DNA of 64,000 bases from the sequence record NC_027364.1. One strand, 5' to 3'. Position 1 is the first letter of the stretch. Every line of letters starts with the position of its first letter. The notes under the pieces were generated by a model, which saw only the letters and a list, made by a program, of their open reading frames with translations, searched no databases and was not told where the DNA came from. Positions 37,469 through 62,172 of the stretch are shown here, one piece after another. Both the position numbers and the translations under genes were made by a program.

Positions 37469-38158
37469 ATGTCATATACTAATACTTCTTTTGAACGTAT
37501 CAATGGTTATTCCTTTGAACGTATTCTAGGTTACTTTTGTGGCACTAACGCCCTAGCATCCATTGCTATCAGTAAGCTAGGAAACGTAAACGTTCTAGTT
37601 ACTGGTGCAGTTTCTTCTTATGCTGGTCTACAACGTTTTCTAAACACTGATATTCCAGAAGAAATTCTAGCATATCTAAATGATAAAGGTATCAAACGTA
37701 TTGATGGAACTGCATTTGTTCTTGGCACACTAGAAGCTGATTACAATGCATCTTATGCAGCACAAACTAACGTTAAACGTATTGTCGATGTTGTTCAACA
37801 ACGTGCGGTTATCATCGCTACCTCTAACATCGCAGGTAATGGTCTTGAAGTATTTCCAGTTACTGGTTTCACCAACGCACCTGATGGTGTATTGAGTGCA
37901 GGTTCAGTTAGTATTGCTGATGCTTCTGTTGTTACCTTCCTAGTTGAACGTGCTGGTGTCTTTAACAAAGATCTTAAATCACCACAAGGTGTACCAAGTA
38001 CTGAATCCGAAGAAGGCCGTCTACTAATTGATGATCTAACTGGTGTTCCACTACTTGCTAAAGATGGTGTTACCGAAGTTTACCTACGTTCCCAATCTGC
38101 TGATGCAGCAGGTGATTTCGGTGTTAAACTTTTCCAATACATCCCAGCATTGGTTTAA
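37469..38158 (+). CDS. abundant virion protein, paralogue 2
   Basis: AGGAGG RBS; same shared motifs and codon bias. Confidence 0.7.
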   Translation: MSYTNTSFERINGYSFERILGYFCGTNALASIAISKLGNVNVLVTGAVSSYAGLQRFLNTDIPEEILAYLNDKGIKRIDGTAFVLGTLEADYNASYAAQTNVKRIVDVVQQRAVIIATSNIAGNGLEVFPVTGFTNAPDGVLSAGSVSIADASVVTFLVERAGVFNKDLKSPQGVPSTESEEGRLLIDDLTGVPLLAKDGVTEVYLRSQSADAAGDFGVKLFQYIPALV

Positions 38159-38171
38159 TATTTTTCAAAAG

Positions 38172-38200
38172 AAAAGGAGAGCAAATGCTCTCCTTTTTTT
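38172..38200. terminator. bidirectional terminator
   Basis: AAAAGGAGAGCA-aa-TGCTCTCCTTTTTT between convergent genes. Confidence 0.85.
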
Positions 38201-38205
38201 ATATG

Positions 38206-38943
38206 TTATCTATATGAACGAAATCCTTCAGGCAAACCAGGTAGCTTGTCTAATCCTTCGTTCGCACTCACCAGCTTTGTGTCGTAATCATCACTGAAAT
38301 CATCCGTAGCAAGTTTACGCCCCAAGTCTCTCACAAAGTTATCGATAATTTCTTCTTCATCATTTCCTGGATGACCTTCAGCTTTCAACTTTTTCCAGAA
38401 ATATTCATTATAGTCAAATACAAACTCAACTTCATTAGTTTCAGGATCAAGAACAACATCCAAATCAATCCAAGGTTCTTTACGAAGTGTGTATATTTCC
38501 TTAGAATATTCACTTTGTGTGATTTCATCGTAACGATATGCAAATTCAATAGCCTTAAGCCTTTTTTCATCACCTTCTGGCATTAACTCAATGATTTCCA
38601 TATCATATTCTTTTTCTGTAATAACTCCAATACTTAGTTTTGCATCAAGAACTTTAACATCATACTGTTCACGAGTAATTTTAGAATATTTTAGTTCAAC
38701 ATCAAGTACAGCAATTAGATATTCCAAATCTCCAATTACGCTATATTTCTTTTTAATATCCAATTGGGCCAATTCAACTTCATATGGAGTTAGATATGTC
38801 AATTCAGCAACTTTCATATCAGCTTCATAATCATCATTGTAGTAGTATGCTTTAGCTATCTCTTTTGCCTTTCCAGAAAGTCCCCAGTGAGCAGGGACCA
38901 TCCAAAATGGAATAAATTTCTTTTTAGCCATTTTTCTTACCAA
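38206..38943 (-). CDS. hypothetical protein
   Basis: 245-aa acidic helical ORF. Confidence 0.65.
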   Translation of the reverse strand: MVRKMAKKKFIPFWMVPAHWGLSGKAKEIAKAYYYNDDYEADMKVAELTYLTPYEVELAQLDIKKKYSVIGDLEYLIAVLDVELKYSKITREQYDVKVLDAKLSIGVITEKEYDMEIIELMPEGDEKRLKAIEFAYRYDEITQSEYSKEIYTLRKEPWIDLDVVLDPETNEVEFVFDYNEYFWKKLKAEGHPGNDEEEIIDNFVRDLGRKLATDDFSDDYDTKLVSANEGLDKLPGLPEGFRSYR

Positions 38944-55680: not shown

Positions 55681-56517
55681 ATGGCTATGAATCCACTTGC
55701 TAAGTACACTAAAATTGAAGAGATCAGTACTAAGTTAGTTACAAACGGCGTTATTCCTTATAAAGAAGGAGTTCTAGGTCCAAAAGGTGTCAAATGTGGA
55801 GTTTGTGCACGTAGTGCACGTGATGAAATGACACTTAATACCCCCGATATGTTACTAAACGGAGATGCAGTATCCCGTGTTATTGAAAACTGTGTTCCTA
55901 ATGTAATTGACGCTGATGAGTTGTATGTAAATGACGTTGAAATGCTTCTTATTGCTATTAAAGTTGCTTCTAAAGAAGAAACATATGATATTAACGTTGT
56001 ATGTCCTGAATGTGAAAAAGAAGGTCGATTTGAACGTAATCTATCATATCTTCTTGAAACTGCACAAGCATTTGAAGAAATCCCATCAATTGATTTAGAT
56101 AATGGACTACGTTTAGAATTTAGACCACTGACATGGAAAGAATATTCATCGTTTGCTGAACGCATGTTCAGTGAGCAGCAGAAGACTAAGTTTCTTGAAA
56201 CTGCTGATATTGATAAAGATGAAAAAGTAAAAATATTTTCTGAAGTATTTGAAAACATGGCTCAACTTAACTTCGATATGATTGGTGGAGTTATTGCAAA
56301 AATTATAACACCAGATGGTGATGAAGTAGTTGAAAAAGAATTTATTAATGAATGGCTTGGACAACAATCGAAGGGAGTACTTAAACTAATTCGTGAAAAA
56401 ATGGATGAAGTACTTGAAATTGGTGTATCTCATAGTATGGAAGTAGAATGTGATGGATGTAATCATCAATGGGAAATTGATGGACTAAAATATGATCCTA
56501 GTCATTTTTTCGAGTAA
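55681..56517 (+). CDS. baseplate hub assembly protein (gp26-like)
   Basis: MNPL N-terminus, LLIAIKVAS, CPEC and CDGC zinc motifs. Confidence 0.7.
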   Translation: MAMNPLAKYTKIEEISTKLVTNGVIPYKEGVLGPKGVKCGVCARSARDEMTLNTPDMLLNGDAVSRVIENCVPNVIDADELYVNDVEMLLIAIKVASKEETYDINVVCPECEKEGRFERNLSYLLETAQAFEEIPSIDLDNGLRLEFRPLTWKEYSSFAERMFSEQQKTKFLETADIDKDEKVKIFSEVFENMAQLNFDMIGGVIAKIITPDGDEVVEKEFINEWLGQQSKGVLKLIREKMDEVLEIGVSHSMEVECDGCNHQWEIDGLKYDPSHFFE

Positions 56518-56726
56518 TGCTTCTCCAGTCATCTCCTGAAGAAATACAAGAAGTACTGAAGGAGATAGAACTGAATAAGTCAGAAATCAAAAATGCACTA
56601 ATGGAATGTTCTGTATATATGGATAACATTGACTATGGAACACTCCTTAATATGCCATTAATAGATAGAGACTTATTAGTTAAGTCTTTTAATAAAAAAA
56701 TTAAAAAACAAAACGAGAAGCACTAA
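56517..56726 (+). CDS. small baseplate assembly protein (gp51-like)
   Basis: LLNMPLIDRDLLV motif; coupled to gp26-like gene. Confidence 0.55.
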   Translation: MLLQSSPEEIQEVLKEIELNKSEIKNALMECSVYMDNIDYGTLLNMPLIDRDLLVKSFNKKIKKQNEKH

Positions 56727-56736
56727 TTTTCATATA

Positions 56737-56763
56737 GCCAGCACATTGTTGCTGGTTTTTTTT
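56737..56763 (+). terminator. intrinsic terminator
   Basis: AGCCAGCA-cattgt-TGCTGGTT followed by T-run. Confidence 0.85.
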
Positions 56764-56980
56764 GGTTTTAAACTACAGAATTATTTGAATTGAATTATGA
56801 AAGGATTAATTTTAATATTATTGGATTCATCTAACTCATTTCATTCGTTAGCTGAAGAATATTCGTTACTACGTAACTCATATTCATTTAATTAAATTAA
56901 TTATAAAGAACTTTAAAAGATTTAATACTTGACGGGATTTGTTGAGGACATTTTCATCCCCCCGCAGGGGAATGAAGACA

Positions 56981-57436
56981 ATAAAAAAGAGACAATGAAG
57001 TCTCTATTTCTTGACGCTGATGGTTTCAGCATTTATTGTATTGCGAATTTCTTAAAAATATATTAAGAACGAAAGCGGGTTGCTCTGTTTCTCTCTATCG
57101 CAGTCATGTGCAACGGTCGTCAGTCTTAATCATCCTGACACTCACCTGAAAGTCTATACAATCAAACTTCAGGCTGTTTATTAAAATCACTTAATAAACT
57201 CCCTTAGCAAATCTGGTAAGGTGCGATCCTTATATGTCTATCTAGGAACTCTCTGTATGCTTATCGGAGTTCTTTATTGAGCCGCATTGCCGTGAGGGGT
57301 TCAAACTATGCCCACATCTAACGGGTTTCTTTTGCTCATCGCACTGTTGAACTGCTCATCTGCCATCTACATTTTCGATAGGATCAGGTTCTAATTTATA
57401 TGCATTTCTGCATTCAACAGGATTGTCATTACTACA
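56981..57436 (-). ncRNA. candidate structured non-coding RNA (or origin primer transcript)
   Basis: No ORF; promoter at 57443-57471; terminator-like AGAGAC/GTCTCT + T-run at 56981-57006; about ten helices including a GAAA tetraloop. Confidence 0.55.
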
Positions 57437-57442
57437 ACAAAC

Positions 57443-57471
57443 ATTATAGCACAAACTTTAAAGTTGTCTCA
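57443..57471 (-). promoter_or_regulatory. TGRGAC-class promoter facing a gene-free region
   Basis: TGAGAC aactttaaagtttgtgc TATAAT. Confidence 0.85.
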
Positions 57472-57524
57472 CTATTTTTATAAAAATATTCATTAAGTAC
57501 TTAAAATATTGCAAATAACTAATC

Positions 57525-57532
57525 TATAAATA
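57525..57532 (+). promoter_or_regulatory. late promoter TATAAATA
   Basis: Exact consensus upstream of endonuclease VII. Confidence 0.75.
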
Positions 57533-57562
57533 TTTTGATAACAAATAGTTTGGTGAGGAATT

Positions 57563-58054
57563 ATGAAAAAAAGATTAAAAGATAGTAAGGATGCTGCAAA
57601 CTATCGAAACGAATTGCTAAAGAAACAAAATGGAATAGATCCTATAATTAAAGAACCAATAACTAAACCAGTACTGGATCACTACCACTATGGTAACCAA
57701 CATTGTAGACAAGTTCTTCAAAATGAAGTCAATGCTTGGGAAGGAAAGGTACAAAACAGCTTCAATCGATATATGAAGCACTTAACTGATAAACCATTAT
57801 ATGAGGTACTCAGAAATCTTGCTGATTACTTAGAGCGTAATAACAGCATTCCTGACGATGAACAAGTTATACATCACACTGCACTAACTGTGGATGTTAA
57901 TAAGTTTAAAAGGCTTCCAGCAACACAGCAAAACGCGATTCTGGAAGGGTTAGGAGTTGTCCCTGGTAGTAACACTACTGCTCGTGTAAAGCAAGCTAGA
58001 AAGCTGATTAAGGACGGTAAATTAAATATGGTTGATATAAAAAAAGGGAGCTAA
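57563..58054 (+). CDS. recombination endonuclease VII (gp49-like), lacking zinc cysteines
   Basis: QNG.D, VLDHYH, RQVL..EVNAWEG, LRNLADYL, IHH are collinear with T4 gp49. Confidence 0.75.
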   Translation: MKKRLKDSKDAANYRNELLKKQNGIDPIIKEPITKPVLDHYHYGNQHCRQVLQNEVNAWEGKVQNSFNRYMKHLTDKPLYEVLRNLADYLERNNSIPDDEQVIHHTALTVDVNKFKRLPATQQNAILEGLGVVPGSNTTARVKQARKLIKDGKLNMVDIKKGS

Positions 58055-62143: not shown

Positions 62144-62172
62144 ATTATAGCACCAAAAAGCAGTTTGTCCCA
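62144..62172 (-). promoter_or_regulatory. TGRGAC-class promoter for gp55-gp47-gp46
   Basis: TGGGAC aaactgctttttggtgc TATAAT; back-to-back with a + strand TATAAATA at 62175-62182. Confidence 0.85.

Follow-up and report, generated by a model that had tools for sequence, protein, structure and literature searches.

We analysed a 64,000-nt stretch of sequence record NC_027364.1 (hereafter the window) and found that its largest internal gene-free gap holds an RNA gene of approximately 510 nt (56928–57436, minus strand, both ends predicted), as delimited by blastn and nhmmer conservation limits and by alignments A1 and A2. The gene is autonomous, occurs as several diverged copies per jumbo phage genome, and is exchanged among mobile elements of a single bacterial order. 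The comparison of relatives shows that the RNA is under strong selection for an elaborate fold of about 19 helices with at least one pseudoknot. A first-pass annotation, made from the letters of the window alone, had proposed an undescribed, densely folded phage noncoding RNA (ncRNA) of about 460 nt at this place. The proposal was borne out by conservation across genera, covariation, strand-specific G-U pairs, a preserved promoter and the lack of an Rfam match; the length was too short, the conserved RNA being ~510 nt. Beyond that proposal, there are at least three paralogs in this phage, further members in prophages and islands, and about 60 nt of extra RNA at the 3′ end.

Covariation, strand and ends of the RNA

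The first-pass annotation had suggested aligning relatives and looking for covariation, and we did so with 54 sequences of less than 95% mutual identity (alignment A2). The helix model, obtained with RNAalifold on four domains and a covariation scan, consists of 19 helices and one pseudoknot. Under this model, 84.4% of alignment cells are paired, compared with 71.7% in shuffled controls and 38–45% when partners were slid by 1–3 columns. Changes on both sides were seen for 72 of the 106 pairs, the covariation score was 0.358 against 0.154 for the control, and none of 500 shuffles reached the observed values. The strongest elements are P3, P4, P6, P11, P12, P13, P15 and the pseudoknot. P1, P2, P8 and the outer part of P9 score lower, as they fall in length-variable regions that are misaligned and where the alignment is imperfect. 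Between the helices lie long unpaired runs that are invariant in the 54 sequences.

Among the helices proposed in the first-pass annotation, CTGTTGAA/TTCAACAG, the GAAA-capped hairpin, GAACTC/GAGTTC, GTTTATTAA/TTAATAAAC, CCTGAA/TTCAGG, GTCAG/CTGAC and TTCTTAA/TTAAGAA all show compensatory changes in relatives. Two others were right in part: GCTGA/TCAGC forms in the window copy, but the family uses a register 3 nt away, GAYG/CGUC; and CCUUA does pair, but its partner by covariation is the upstream UAAGG (57232–57228), not the downstream one that had been chosen. The long-range pairing GTGCGAT/ATCGCAC was not retained, with mismatches or gaps in most relatives, and part of it belongs to P4. We also discarded a long-range pairing of GAUGAG with a 3′ CUCGUC, which was broken by variants on inspection of the alignment. 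As tertiary partners for the G-run near the 3′ end, CUUUCGU, CCCGU and CCCGC were considered; these columns are invariant or G-rich, so covariation is uninformative.

The helix model contains 556 G-U cells versus 187 A-C cells, and canonical pairing reaches 84.4% on the minus (sense) strand versus 77.6% on the antisense strand. The G-U pairs, together with the promoter and a terminator-like hairpin, place the predicted RNA on the minus strand, in agreement with the preference expressed earlier. Folding energy relative to shuffles (z = –3.7 for the minus strand, z = –3.4 for the opposite strand) was not used to choose the strand because both strands score alike.

A consensus scan located the promoter, which had already been recognized as pointing into the gap, at 57443–57471 on the minus strand. 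It comprises a –35-like GAGACA (57470–57465), an extended –10 TG (57451–57450) and TATAAT (57448–57443), in a GAGACA-16-TATAAT spacing with TG before the –10 (sigma-70 type). This layout recurs at an equal distance in 53 of the 54 non-redundant relatives, bacterial copies included (TG in 45, exact TATAAT in 41), and because the distance is kept, transcription should start near 57436. As far as the consensus allows one to say, host sigma-70 RNA polymerase would most likely transcribe the gene from this extended –10 promoter. The wider promoter class TG[AG][AG]ACA-N13-15-TGnTATAAT has seven members in the window, each of them on the minus strand, versus 0.04 expected by shuffling, with 5′ ends at 62172, 57471 (the RNA promoter), 44259, 31424, 21394, 15005 and 9308. 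Bacterial copies of the RNA carry the same class.

At the other end, a terminator scan found an intrinsic-terminator-like hairpin, P15 (AGAGAC/GUCUCU and a U-run, 56982–57005, minus strand), inside the conserved RNA. The site is a 6-bp stem (57005–56988) followed by UUUUUAUU, and all five pairs covary. This stem and T-run had been taken to close the RNA. The hairpin itself is upheld by covariation, but not its role as the end, as conservation goes on for about 60 nt, to 56928. P15 is missing from several paralogs that still carry the downstream 3′ module, and P16 and P17, located 3′ of P15, are among the most conserved parts of the RNA. Since conservation passes P15 and P15-less paralogs keep the 3′ module, the functional RNA is taken to reach ~56928. 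The conserved stretch spans 57438–56926 on the minus strand, and RNA numbering starts at 57438 (RNA position p = window 57439 – p). In other genera, a hairpin with compensatory changes lies on the same strand ~100 nt past the RNA 3′ end (locus L008, ~1100–1135; locus L010, ~1090–1125; TTGCCATTCTTCGAATGTCAAAGAATT on the plus strand); it was not clearly seen in PBECO4-type Asteriusvirus or in RaK2/K64-1. The transcript might extend to include this hairpin; alternatively, as it contains TTGACA, the hairpin might be the promoter region of the next gene.

The gap itself (56727–57562, 836 nt) is the largest internal interval of the window free of open reading frames (ORFs) when ORFs of at least 50 aa on either strand are counted; other uncovered stretches longer than 170 nt all touch the window ends, where run-off ORFs go uncounted. 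Its G+C content is 0.42–0.43 at 57100–57400 versus 0.25–0.33 in the flanks. Both the size and the G+C richness of the gap had been correctly noted at first pass. Each of the six frames of the window copy is interrupted by 7–16 stop codons, and of the indels in the family 84% are not multiples of three. Because of stops in all frames and frame-breaking indels, the family is not coding. In the records of phages SHEFM2K, E9.1, JP4, Hallingskeid, Yen9-04 and K64-1, the RNA locus is annotated with two to five short 'hypothetical protein' ORFs of 23–70 aa. Short ORFs annotated over the RNA locus in deposited phage records are almost certainly spurious, and present phage annotations leave the RNA loci either blank or filled with such ORFs.

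Distribution, paralogs and copies in mobile elements

The window matches Escherichia phage PBECO4 at 100% identity (position 56700 of the window is PBECO4 304700) and phage 121Q at 99.9%; both are Asteriusvirus jumbo phages of the RaK2-like group. In a collection of 50,697 phage records, blastn matches to the element were obtained in ~72, every one a RaK2-like jumbo phage and together the whole of that group in the collection, at 56–96% identity to the window stretch. The hosts of these phages are Escherichia, Salmonella, Klebsiella, Erwinia, Yersinia, Cronobacter, Pectobacterium and Serratia, plus two labelled Xanthomonas. The latter two, OR258281 (XaC1) and OP292654 (XbC2), are recorded as Xanthomonas phages and cluster with enterobacterial jumbo phages (Mimasvirus/Eneladusvirus-like); Xanthomonas is an outlier as a recorded host in a family whose hosts are otherwise enterobacterial. 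Between genera, identity is 67–77% over window 56921–57406, and the remaining gap is not conserved.

In every genome the element occupies an ORF-free gap of ~700 bp, in one of three gene neighbourhoods. It lies with the baseplate hub and endonuclease VII genes in Asteriusvirus, Munch, Hallingskeid, GAP32 and CBB, in an ADP-ribosylglycohydrolase region in BF, pEa_SNUABM_44, Yen9-04, XbC2 and Kaldavass, and upstream of ORF446, a methylase and a cytidylyltransferase in RaK2 and K64-1. No downstream or adjacent protein gene was constant across the contexts examined. An Hfq-like and a KTSC protein had been put forward at first pass as putative partners.

PBECO4 carries at least three copies: the window copy, copy B at 93,661–94,126, and a third at 37,970–38,539. 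Within the 64-kb window, nhmmer found a single family copy. Copy B was found with a metagenomic relative as the query and sits in the RaK2 ORF446 context. A fourth PBECO4 copy, of the D-type of Munch and EJP2, was not detected. Across jumbo phages, two to four copies per genome were confirmed, with up to five BLAST places. The paralogs are 56–70% identical to the window copy and fall into several groups in the tree; since each group spans genera, the paralogs are old and individually maintained. Prophage copies are interleaved with the jumbo-phage paralogs in the same tree. Paralog B (PBECO4 92161–95626; RaK2) always lies directly upstream of, and co-directional with, a 612-nt ORF, a DNA methylase gene and a cytidylyltransferase gene. 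In PBECO4, 41 nt separate copy B from the 612-nt ORF, and read-through into the downstream genes is possible.

A loose single-block pattern, GAAACNGNGNAACCCGC, returned mostly chance matches, and a strict two-block pattern (GACCGTT-N14-30-GAAACNGNGNAACCCGC) was used instead. In a viral collection it gave 32 stretches, nearly all on contigs >100 kb, mostly of jumbo size and with two to four per contig; beyond these, nothing was found in smaller viral contigs. The same pattern hit 77 stretches in metagenomes and 12 contigs of bacterial genomes. By nhmmer, nine of these 12 contigs hold full-length members, namely eight Enterobacterales contigs (carriers include Serratia, Citrobacter, Enterobacter, Silvania and Buttiauxella) and one short contig of a metagenome-assembled genome binned as Clostridium. 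Most bacterial loci have the order integrase (large serine or tyrosine), co-directional RNA, then a convergent CI-type helix-turn-helix/S24 repressor, which is how a prophage is arranged at its accessory end. The Serratia fonticola locus differs in that integrase and RNA are separated by two ParB-like genes and a repressor was not seen. Each prophage or island carries a single copy.

Two of 5,426 complete E. coli genomes carry a family member. One of them, E. coli LR-29-1, has the RNA in a small island beside ffs, with no feature annotated over it. Located within chromosome 3469973–3488553, this island extends for ~10 kb beside the 4.5S RNA gene ffs and contains a broken tyrosine integrase and IS3, and the RNA lies within a 1.4-kb unannotated gap. 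The island also holds a candidate defence system predicted by PADLOC, PDC-M45 (DUF488 and dual-OB proteins).

Elements of the fold, the repeated motif and the flanks

All elements below lie on the minus strand. P1 (57344–57420), the closing helix of the 5′ domain, pairs CUGUUGAA (57420–57413) with UUCAACAG (57351–57344). A per-sequence search found at least six contiguous pairs in 41 of the 54 sequences, with 30 different strand sequences, and RNAalifold on domain 1 agrees. P2 (57401–57412) is a UGCA-GAAA-UGCA hairpin with a GNRA tetraloop at 57408–57405; its place, where the alignment is poor, is taken in all lineages by a hairpin of variable sequence, often capped by GAAA. The hairpin P3 (57360–57387; 94.7% paired, seven of eight pairs changing on both sides) has two bulges and the conserved loop GAAAAUGUA, and is followed by a conserved GAUGAG. 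P4 (57278–57338), formed by 57338–57334 with 57282–57278, is 99.6% paired with covariation at four of five pairs, and encloses P5 (57324–57321 with 57293–57290; 99.5% paired), which bears a variable insert. The internal-loop strands of P4/P5, AAAAGAAAC and CAAUGCG, are conserved. The next hairpin, P6 (GAACUC/GAGUUC, 57246–57272), is 91% paired, and all five of its aligned pairs change on both sides. In P7 (UAAGG-AUCGCA-CCUUA, 57217–57232), compensatory UAUGG/CCAUA, UGAG/CUCA and UAGG/CCUA were seen, though its score is depressed by misalignment.

Downstream of P7 lies the Shine-Dalgarno-like UAAGGGA (57200–57206), in which A234–A239 (RNA numbering) are invariant in the 54 sequences. It is unpaired in our preferred model; RNAalifold instead pairs RNA positions 233–237 with CCUUA. 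The family alignment showed no conserved ORF downstream of it. P8 (GUUUA/UAAAC, 57176–57199) has up to six pair types per position and a tip with a variable insert in relatives. P9 (57145–57173) is a long hairpin whose inner six pairs are at least 94% paired with up to six pair types, and its apical loop AUUGUA (57162–57157) forms the pseudoknot with UACAAU (57035–57040), a 3′ strand that stacks on P11 in the model. In this pseudoknot, 99.7% of cells are paired and every one of the six pairs changes on both sides. P10 (GUGUCAG/CUGACGC, 57116–57141) is 89.7% paired with covariation seen, and is followed by the invariant GACCGUUGC.

P11 (57042–57102; 57102–57098 with 57046–57042) is 98.5% paired, with four pairs changing on both sides, and encloses two further helices. 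These are P12 (57095–57091 with 57075–57071; 100% paired, two pairs changing on both sides), with the invariant loop AAACAGAGCAACCCG, and P13 (57069–57065 with 57053–57049; 86.5% paired, four pairs changing on both sides). The hairpin P14, together with the first CGUCAAG (57016–57010), occupies 57010–57030, and its family register GAYG/CGUC is 90% paired. Beyond P15, the 3′ module (56928–56970) consists of P16 (a C4/G6 hairpin, CCCC-UGCG-GGGG, 56970–56959), P17 and the second CGUCAAG (56934–56928). G477–G481 (RNA numbering) of P16 are invariant, and C-to-U changes keep G-U pairs on the minus strand only. P17, GAUGA/(C)CGUC (56958–56954 with 56935–56931), is 91% paired; in one Serratia copy (locus L165) an A-U pair has been flipped to U-A.

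The motif CGUC[AC]A was found 77 times on the sense strand of the family sequences versus 10 expected, and seven times on the antisense strand. By a strict count it occurs zero to five times per RNA, and it lies in the 3′ strand of helices. The wider unit, a GAYG/CGUC helix with a conserved U-G pair and an A-rich sequence after it, recurs two to five times per RNA. The two constant CGUCA(A/G) motifs (57016–57010 and 56934–56928) change in concert by lineage: CGUC/CGUC, CGAC/CGAC, or CUUC/CUUC. CGAC/CGAC was seen in the Serratia copy L165, where the GAUG partners have changed to match, and CUUC/CUUC in the RaK2 type. This concerted change fits a single reader of both sites, swapped pairing, or intermolecular pairing. 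In many members the tip of P13, of P8 or of both contains an optional module of ~30 nt, UACAAUAUAGAUCCGUCCAAAAUU, which contributes GAYG/CGUC repeats. The window copy is without it (its P13 tip is 57054–57064), but it is present in the close relatives UE-S1 (94% identical) and A4 (88%); in the UE-S1 record, the module (locus L002, 1587–1744) is annotated as a repeat_region.

The gap is flanked on the left by a 69-aa ORF (56517–56726, plus strand, phrog_18291) that follows the baseplate hub gene, and on the right by the endonuclease VII gene (57563–58054, plus strand). A strong hairpin, CCAGCACATTGTTGCTGG, followed by a T-run (56736–56757) ends the plus-strand unit of the baseplate hub gene and the 69-aa ORF. 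It is kept across genera and was the source of the only notable Rfam matches by E-value (terminator look-alikes of small RNA (sRNA) families). PHROGs and PADLOC searches of neighbouring proteins gave only families of unknown function, plus one candidate defence system in one island.

Possible functions and comparison with known RNAs

By analogy with the ornate phage RNAs GOLLD and ROOL, we give a little better than even chances to the view that this ~510-nt stand-alone gene makes a trans-acting folded RNA particle, a scaffold or a decoy. The RNA would act in trans as a folded particle, neither as an antisense RNA nor as a cis leader. It might serve as a scaffold or binding platform to which a macromolecule of host or phage, or further copies of the RNA, would attach. 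Candidate binding features are the repeated GAUG/CGUC-A modules, two to five per RNA, and the invariant UAAGGGA, unpaired in the preferred model; the concerted change of the two CGUCA motifs also suggests a binding platform. We favour this view because the cis, antisense and primer roles are unlikely: gene neighbours differ from place to place, as does their orientation; what selection preserves is pairing and scattered invariant nucleotides, not a contiguous seed; and the whole length is structurally constrained, with prophage copies located by an integrase. Several points weigh against it. The transcript, its ends and its abundance are predictions for every family member, the binding partner is only putative, and ARAGORN found no tRNA genes nearby, unlike many GOLLD and ROOL loci. 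Some copies are co-directional with, and just upstream of, genes (41 nt for copy B), and individual copies may have a cis role. The numerous unpaired nucleotides that are invariant would suit a ribozyme just as well, and the step to a scaffold or decoy comes from analogy and from the exclusion of alternatives.

It is scarcely credible that there is no RNA gene here, and that the stretch is instead a decayed protein gene, a DNA-level element of protein-binding repeats, or the cis leader of a neighbour. TTGACG-like plus-strand repeats can be read as DNA sites, and copy B does lie directly upstream of co-directional genes; however, stops occur in all frames, indels break the frame, and neighbours and orientation differ between contexts. 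Compensatory changes and the G-U asymmetry are an RNA signature, and covariation already largely refutes this explanation. A replication primer, raised at first pass as an R-loop RNA, fares little better and is very unlikely. Such an RNA would mark an origin in the manner of T4 oriF/oriG or ColE1 RNA II and hybridise through its G-run, the copies representing several origins. The strong promoter into a gene-free region, the invariant GGGGGG after a U-run near the 3′ end, and the several copies per genome, as T4 has several origins, all suit this idea, and ColE1 RNA II is similar in size to the present RNA. Nevertheless, 19 helices and a pseudoknot are kept by compensatory change over the whole length, far beyond the needs of a primer, and C-to-U changes opposite the G-run preserve the RNA hairpin rather than a DNA motif. 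Prophage and island copies lie between integrase and repressor, away from replication genes, and no conserved AT-rich unwinding element was found downstream.

The chief rivals of the particle view are a ribozyme and a decoy for a specific protein. The conserved features can be read in terms of catalysis. In a new ribozyme class, processing itself or cleaving or ligating another RNA, the junction nucleotides would form the active site and the GAUG/CGUC helices would be substrate-like. In its size, in having a pseudoknot and in its unusually large number of invariant unpaired nucleotides (among them GAAAAUGUA, GACCGUUGC, AAACAGAGCAACCCG, CGGCAAUGCGGC and UAAGGGA), the RNA recalls large ribozymes; two to five near-identical helices share a conserved U-G pair, and no terminator accounts for where the conserved RNA ends on its 3′ side. 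On the other hand, no known ribozyme model matches even at E-values up to 5–10, nothing indicates a substrate, and GOLLD, ROOL and OLE are comparably conserved without known catalytic activity (PMC12286853), so we regard a ribozyme as improbable. We are also doubtful, if less so, about a decoy or sponge for one host protein (a defence sensor, nuclease or global RNA-binding protein) bound by the CGUCA hairpins, with paralogs tuned to variants; such a decoy would be a narrower form of the trans-acting particle, with predictions of its own. The family is confined to Enterobacterales mobile elements, lytic and temperate, it occupies an accessory slot beside the integrase in prophages, it shares the LR-29-1 island with the candidate defence genes PDC-M45, and its two CGUCA motifs change together in three lineages, as expected with a single reader. 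Yet two to five motif copies per RNA are far below CsrB-type sponges, the elaborate conserved core exceeds what a sponge needs, no protein is known as a candidate, and the defence-island context is one locus. Still tentative, though a more serious possibility than either, is a new class of ornate RNA particle with its own activity that reprograms the infected cell, be it through co-assembling paralogs, a particle that binds ribosomes or defence proteins, or a ribozyme. In the case of co-assembling paralogs, helices that are swapped or formed between molecules would account for the concerted GAUG/CGUC changes.

Few RNAs of bacteria and phages are large, highly structured and of unknown function, and every one of them has led to new biology; those described to date lack a convenient model in Enterobacterales. 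The present family occurs in coliphages able to grow on laboratory E. coli (the host listed for phage Sharanji is K-12 MG1655), and genetics, RNA sequencing (RNA-seq), pull-downs and cryo-electron microscopy are therefore straightforward. Up to ~2 kb per jumbo phage genome is given to conserved paralogs, each with a strong promoter, which implies that their role in infection is an important one. The copies in prophages and in a defence-type island link the family to mobile-element conflicts.

Rfam 15 (4227 models) gave no match in the window at gathering thresholds, and none on the RNA in eight bacterial loci. In E-value mode, applied to the window and six other copies, matches within the RNA were short, far below gathering thresholds and mutually unrelated, and the better-scoring ones fell on flanking terminators outside the RNA. 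ARAGORN found no tRNA or transfer-messenger RNA (tmRNA) in the window or in 32 family loci. The first-pass judgement that the RNA lacks a tRNA, tmRNA, RNase P or group I/II intron identity is thus sustained by ARAGORN and Rfam. No description of the RNA was found in the full-text literature on jumbo phage ncRNAs, RaK2/121Q/PBECO4 transcriptomes, ornate RNAs and viral structured-RNA surveys.

A tmRNA was rejected on the ARAGORN result and because the sole Rfam tmRNA match (5.5 bits, E = 9.9) falls on a fragment. Bacterial RNase P RNA gave no match at E up to 10, and the pseudoknot of the family varies in sequence, unlike P4 of RNase P. Group I and II introns gave no Rfam match; the RNA has its own promoter and is intergenic in every context. 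An Hfq-type base-pairing sRNA was set aside because such RNAs measure ~50–300 nt versus ~510 nt here and have a conserved single-stranded seed and a terminator at the 3′ end; in the present RNA conservation is structural, and the terminator-like hairpin lies internally and, in paralogs, can be dispensed with. A riboswitch or cis leader is disfavoured because, across the three phage contexts and the prophages, the gene downstream is a different one or is convergent. CsrB/RsmZ sponges display many repeats of a short motif in hairpin loops; the motif of the present RNA is enriched, but with zero to five copies per RNA, located in the 3′ strand of helices. With ColE1 RNA II and T4 origin transcripts it shares a promoter-driven ncRNA of several hundred nt. 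In ColE1 RNA II, a G-rich segment is important for hybrid formation. Unlike these transcripts, the present RNA is selected for pairing over its whole length and is also found in integrated elements away from replication genes.

In PA5oct, a RaK2-related jumbo phage, the long ncRNAs ncRNA001–004 are gene-free, strongly transcribed, 236–619 nt long and defined by RNA-seq (PMC7318152). Like the present gene, they lie in gene-free regions of a related jumbo phage, and they show that such phages make abundant long ncRNAs. None of the PA5oct RNAs has a reported structure. Our comparison covered ncRNA002 (451 nt), which has no nhmmer similarity to the family and no hallmark motif of it.

The closest parallels are ROOL and GOLLD. 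ROOL (RF03087) is a large (~500–650 nt), multi-helix, pseudoknotted phage and prophage RNA that forms its own transcription unit without a constant partner gene (PMC12286853). The present RNA resembles it in being phage- and prophage-borne, large, pseudoknotted and multi-helix, with its own transcription unit and no fixed protein-gene partner. It differs in lacking any sequence or structure match, in its Enterobacterales hosts (versus Lactobacillales and rumen bacteria), in the absence of nearby tRNAs, and in having several paralogs per jumbo phage. With GOLLD it shares the character of an ornate phage/prophage RNA in which the 3′ part is conserved, the 5′ parts vary more and the inserts are variable. 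It is unlike GOLLD in giving no model match, in size (~430–630 nt versus >800 nt), in having no link to a tRNA array and in being multi-copy per genome. For GOLLD (RF01998), an association with ribosomes has been reported from pull-downs (PMC12286853), and this may be set beside the invariant Shine-Dalgarno-like motif of the present RNA, which is unpaired in the preferred model. Because it has no model match, no tRNA linkage, different hosts and multiple copies, the RNA is not a member of ROOL or GOLLD; it is a new family within the known, poorly understood kind of ornate RNAs.

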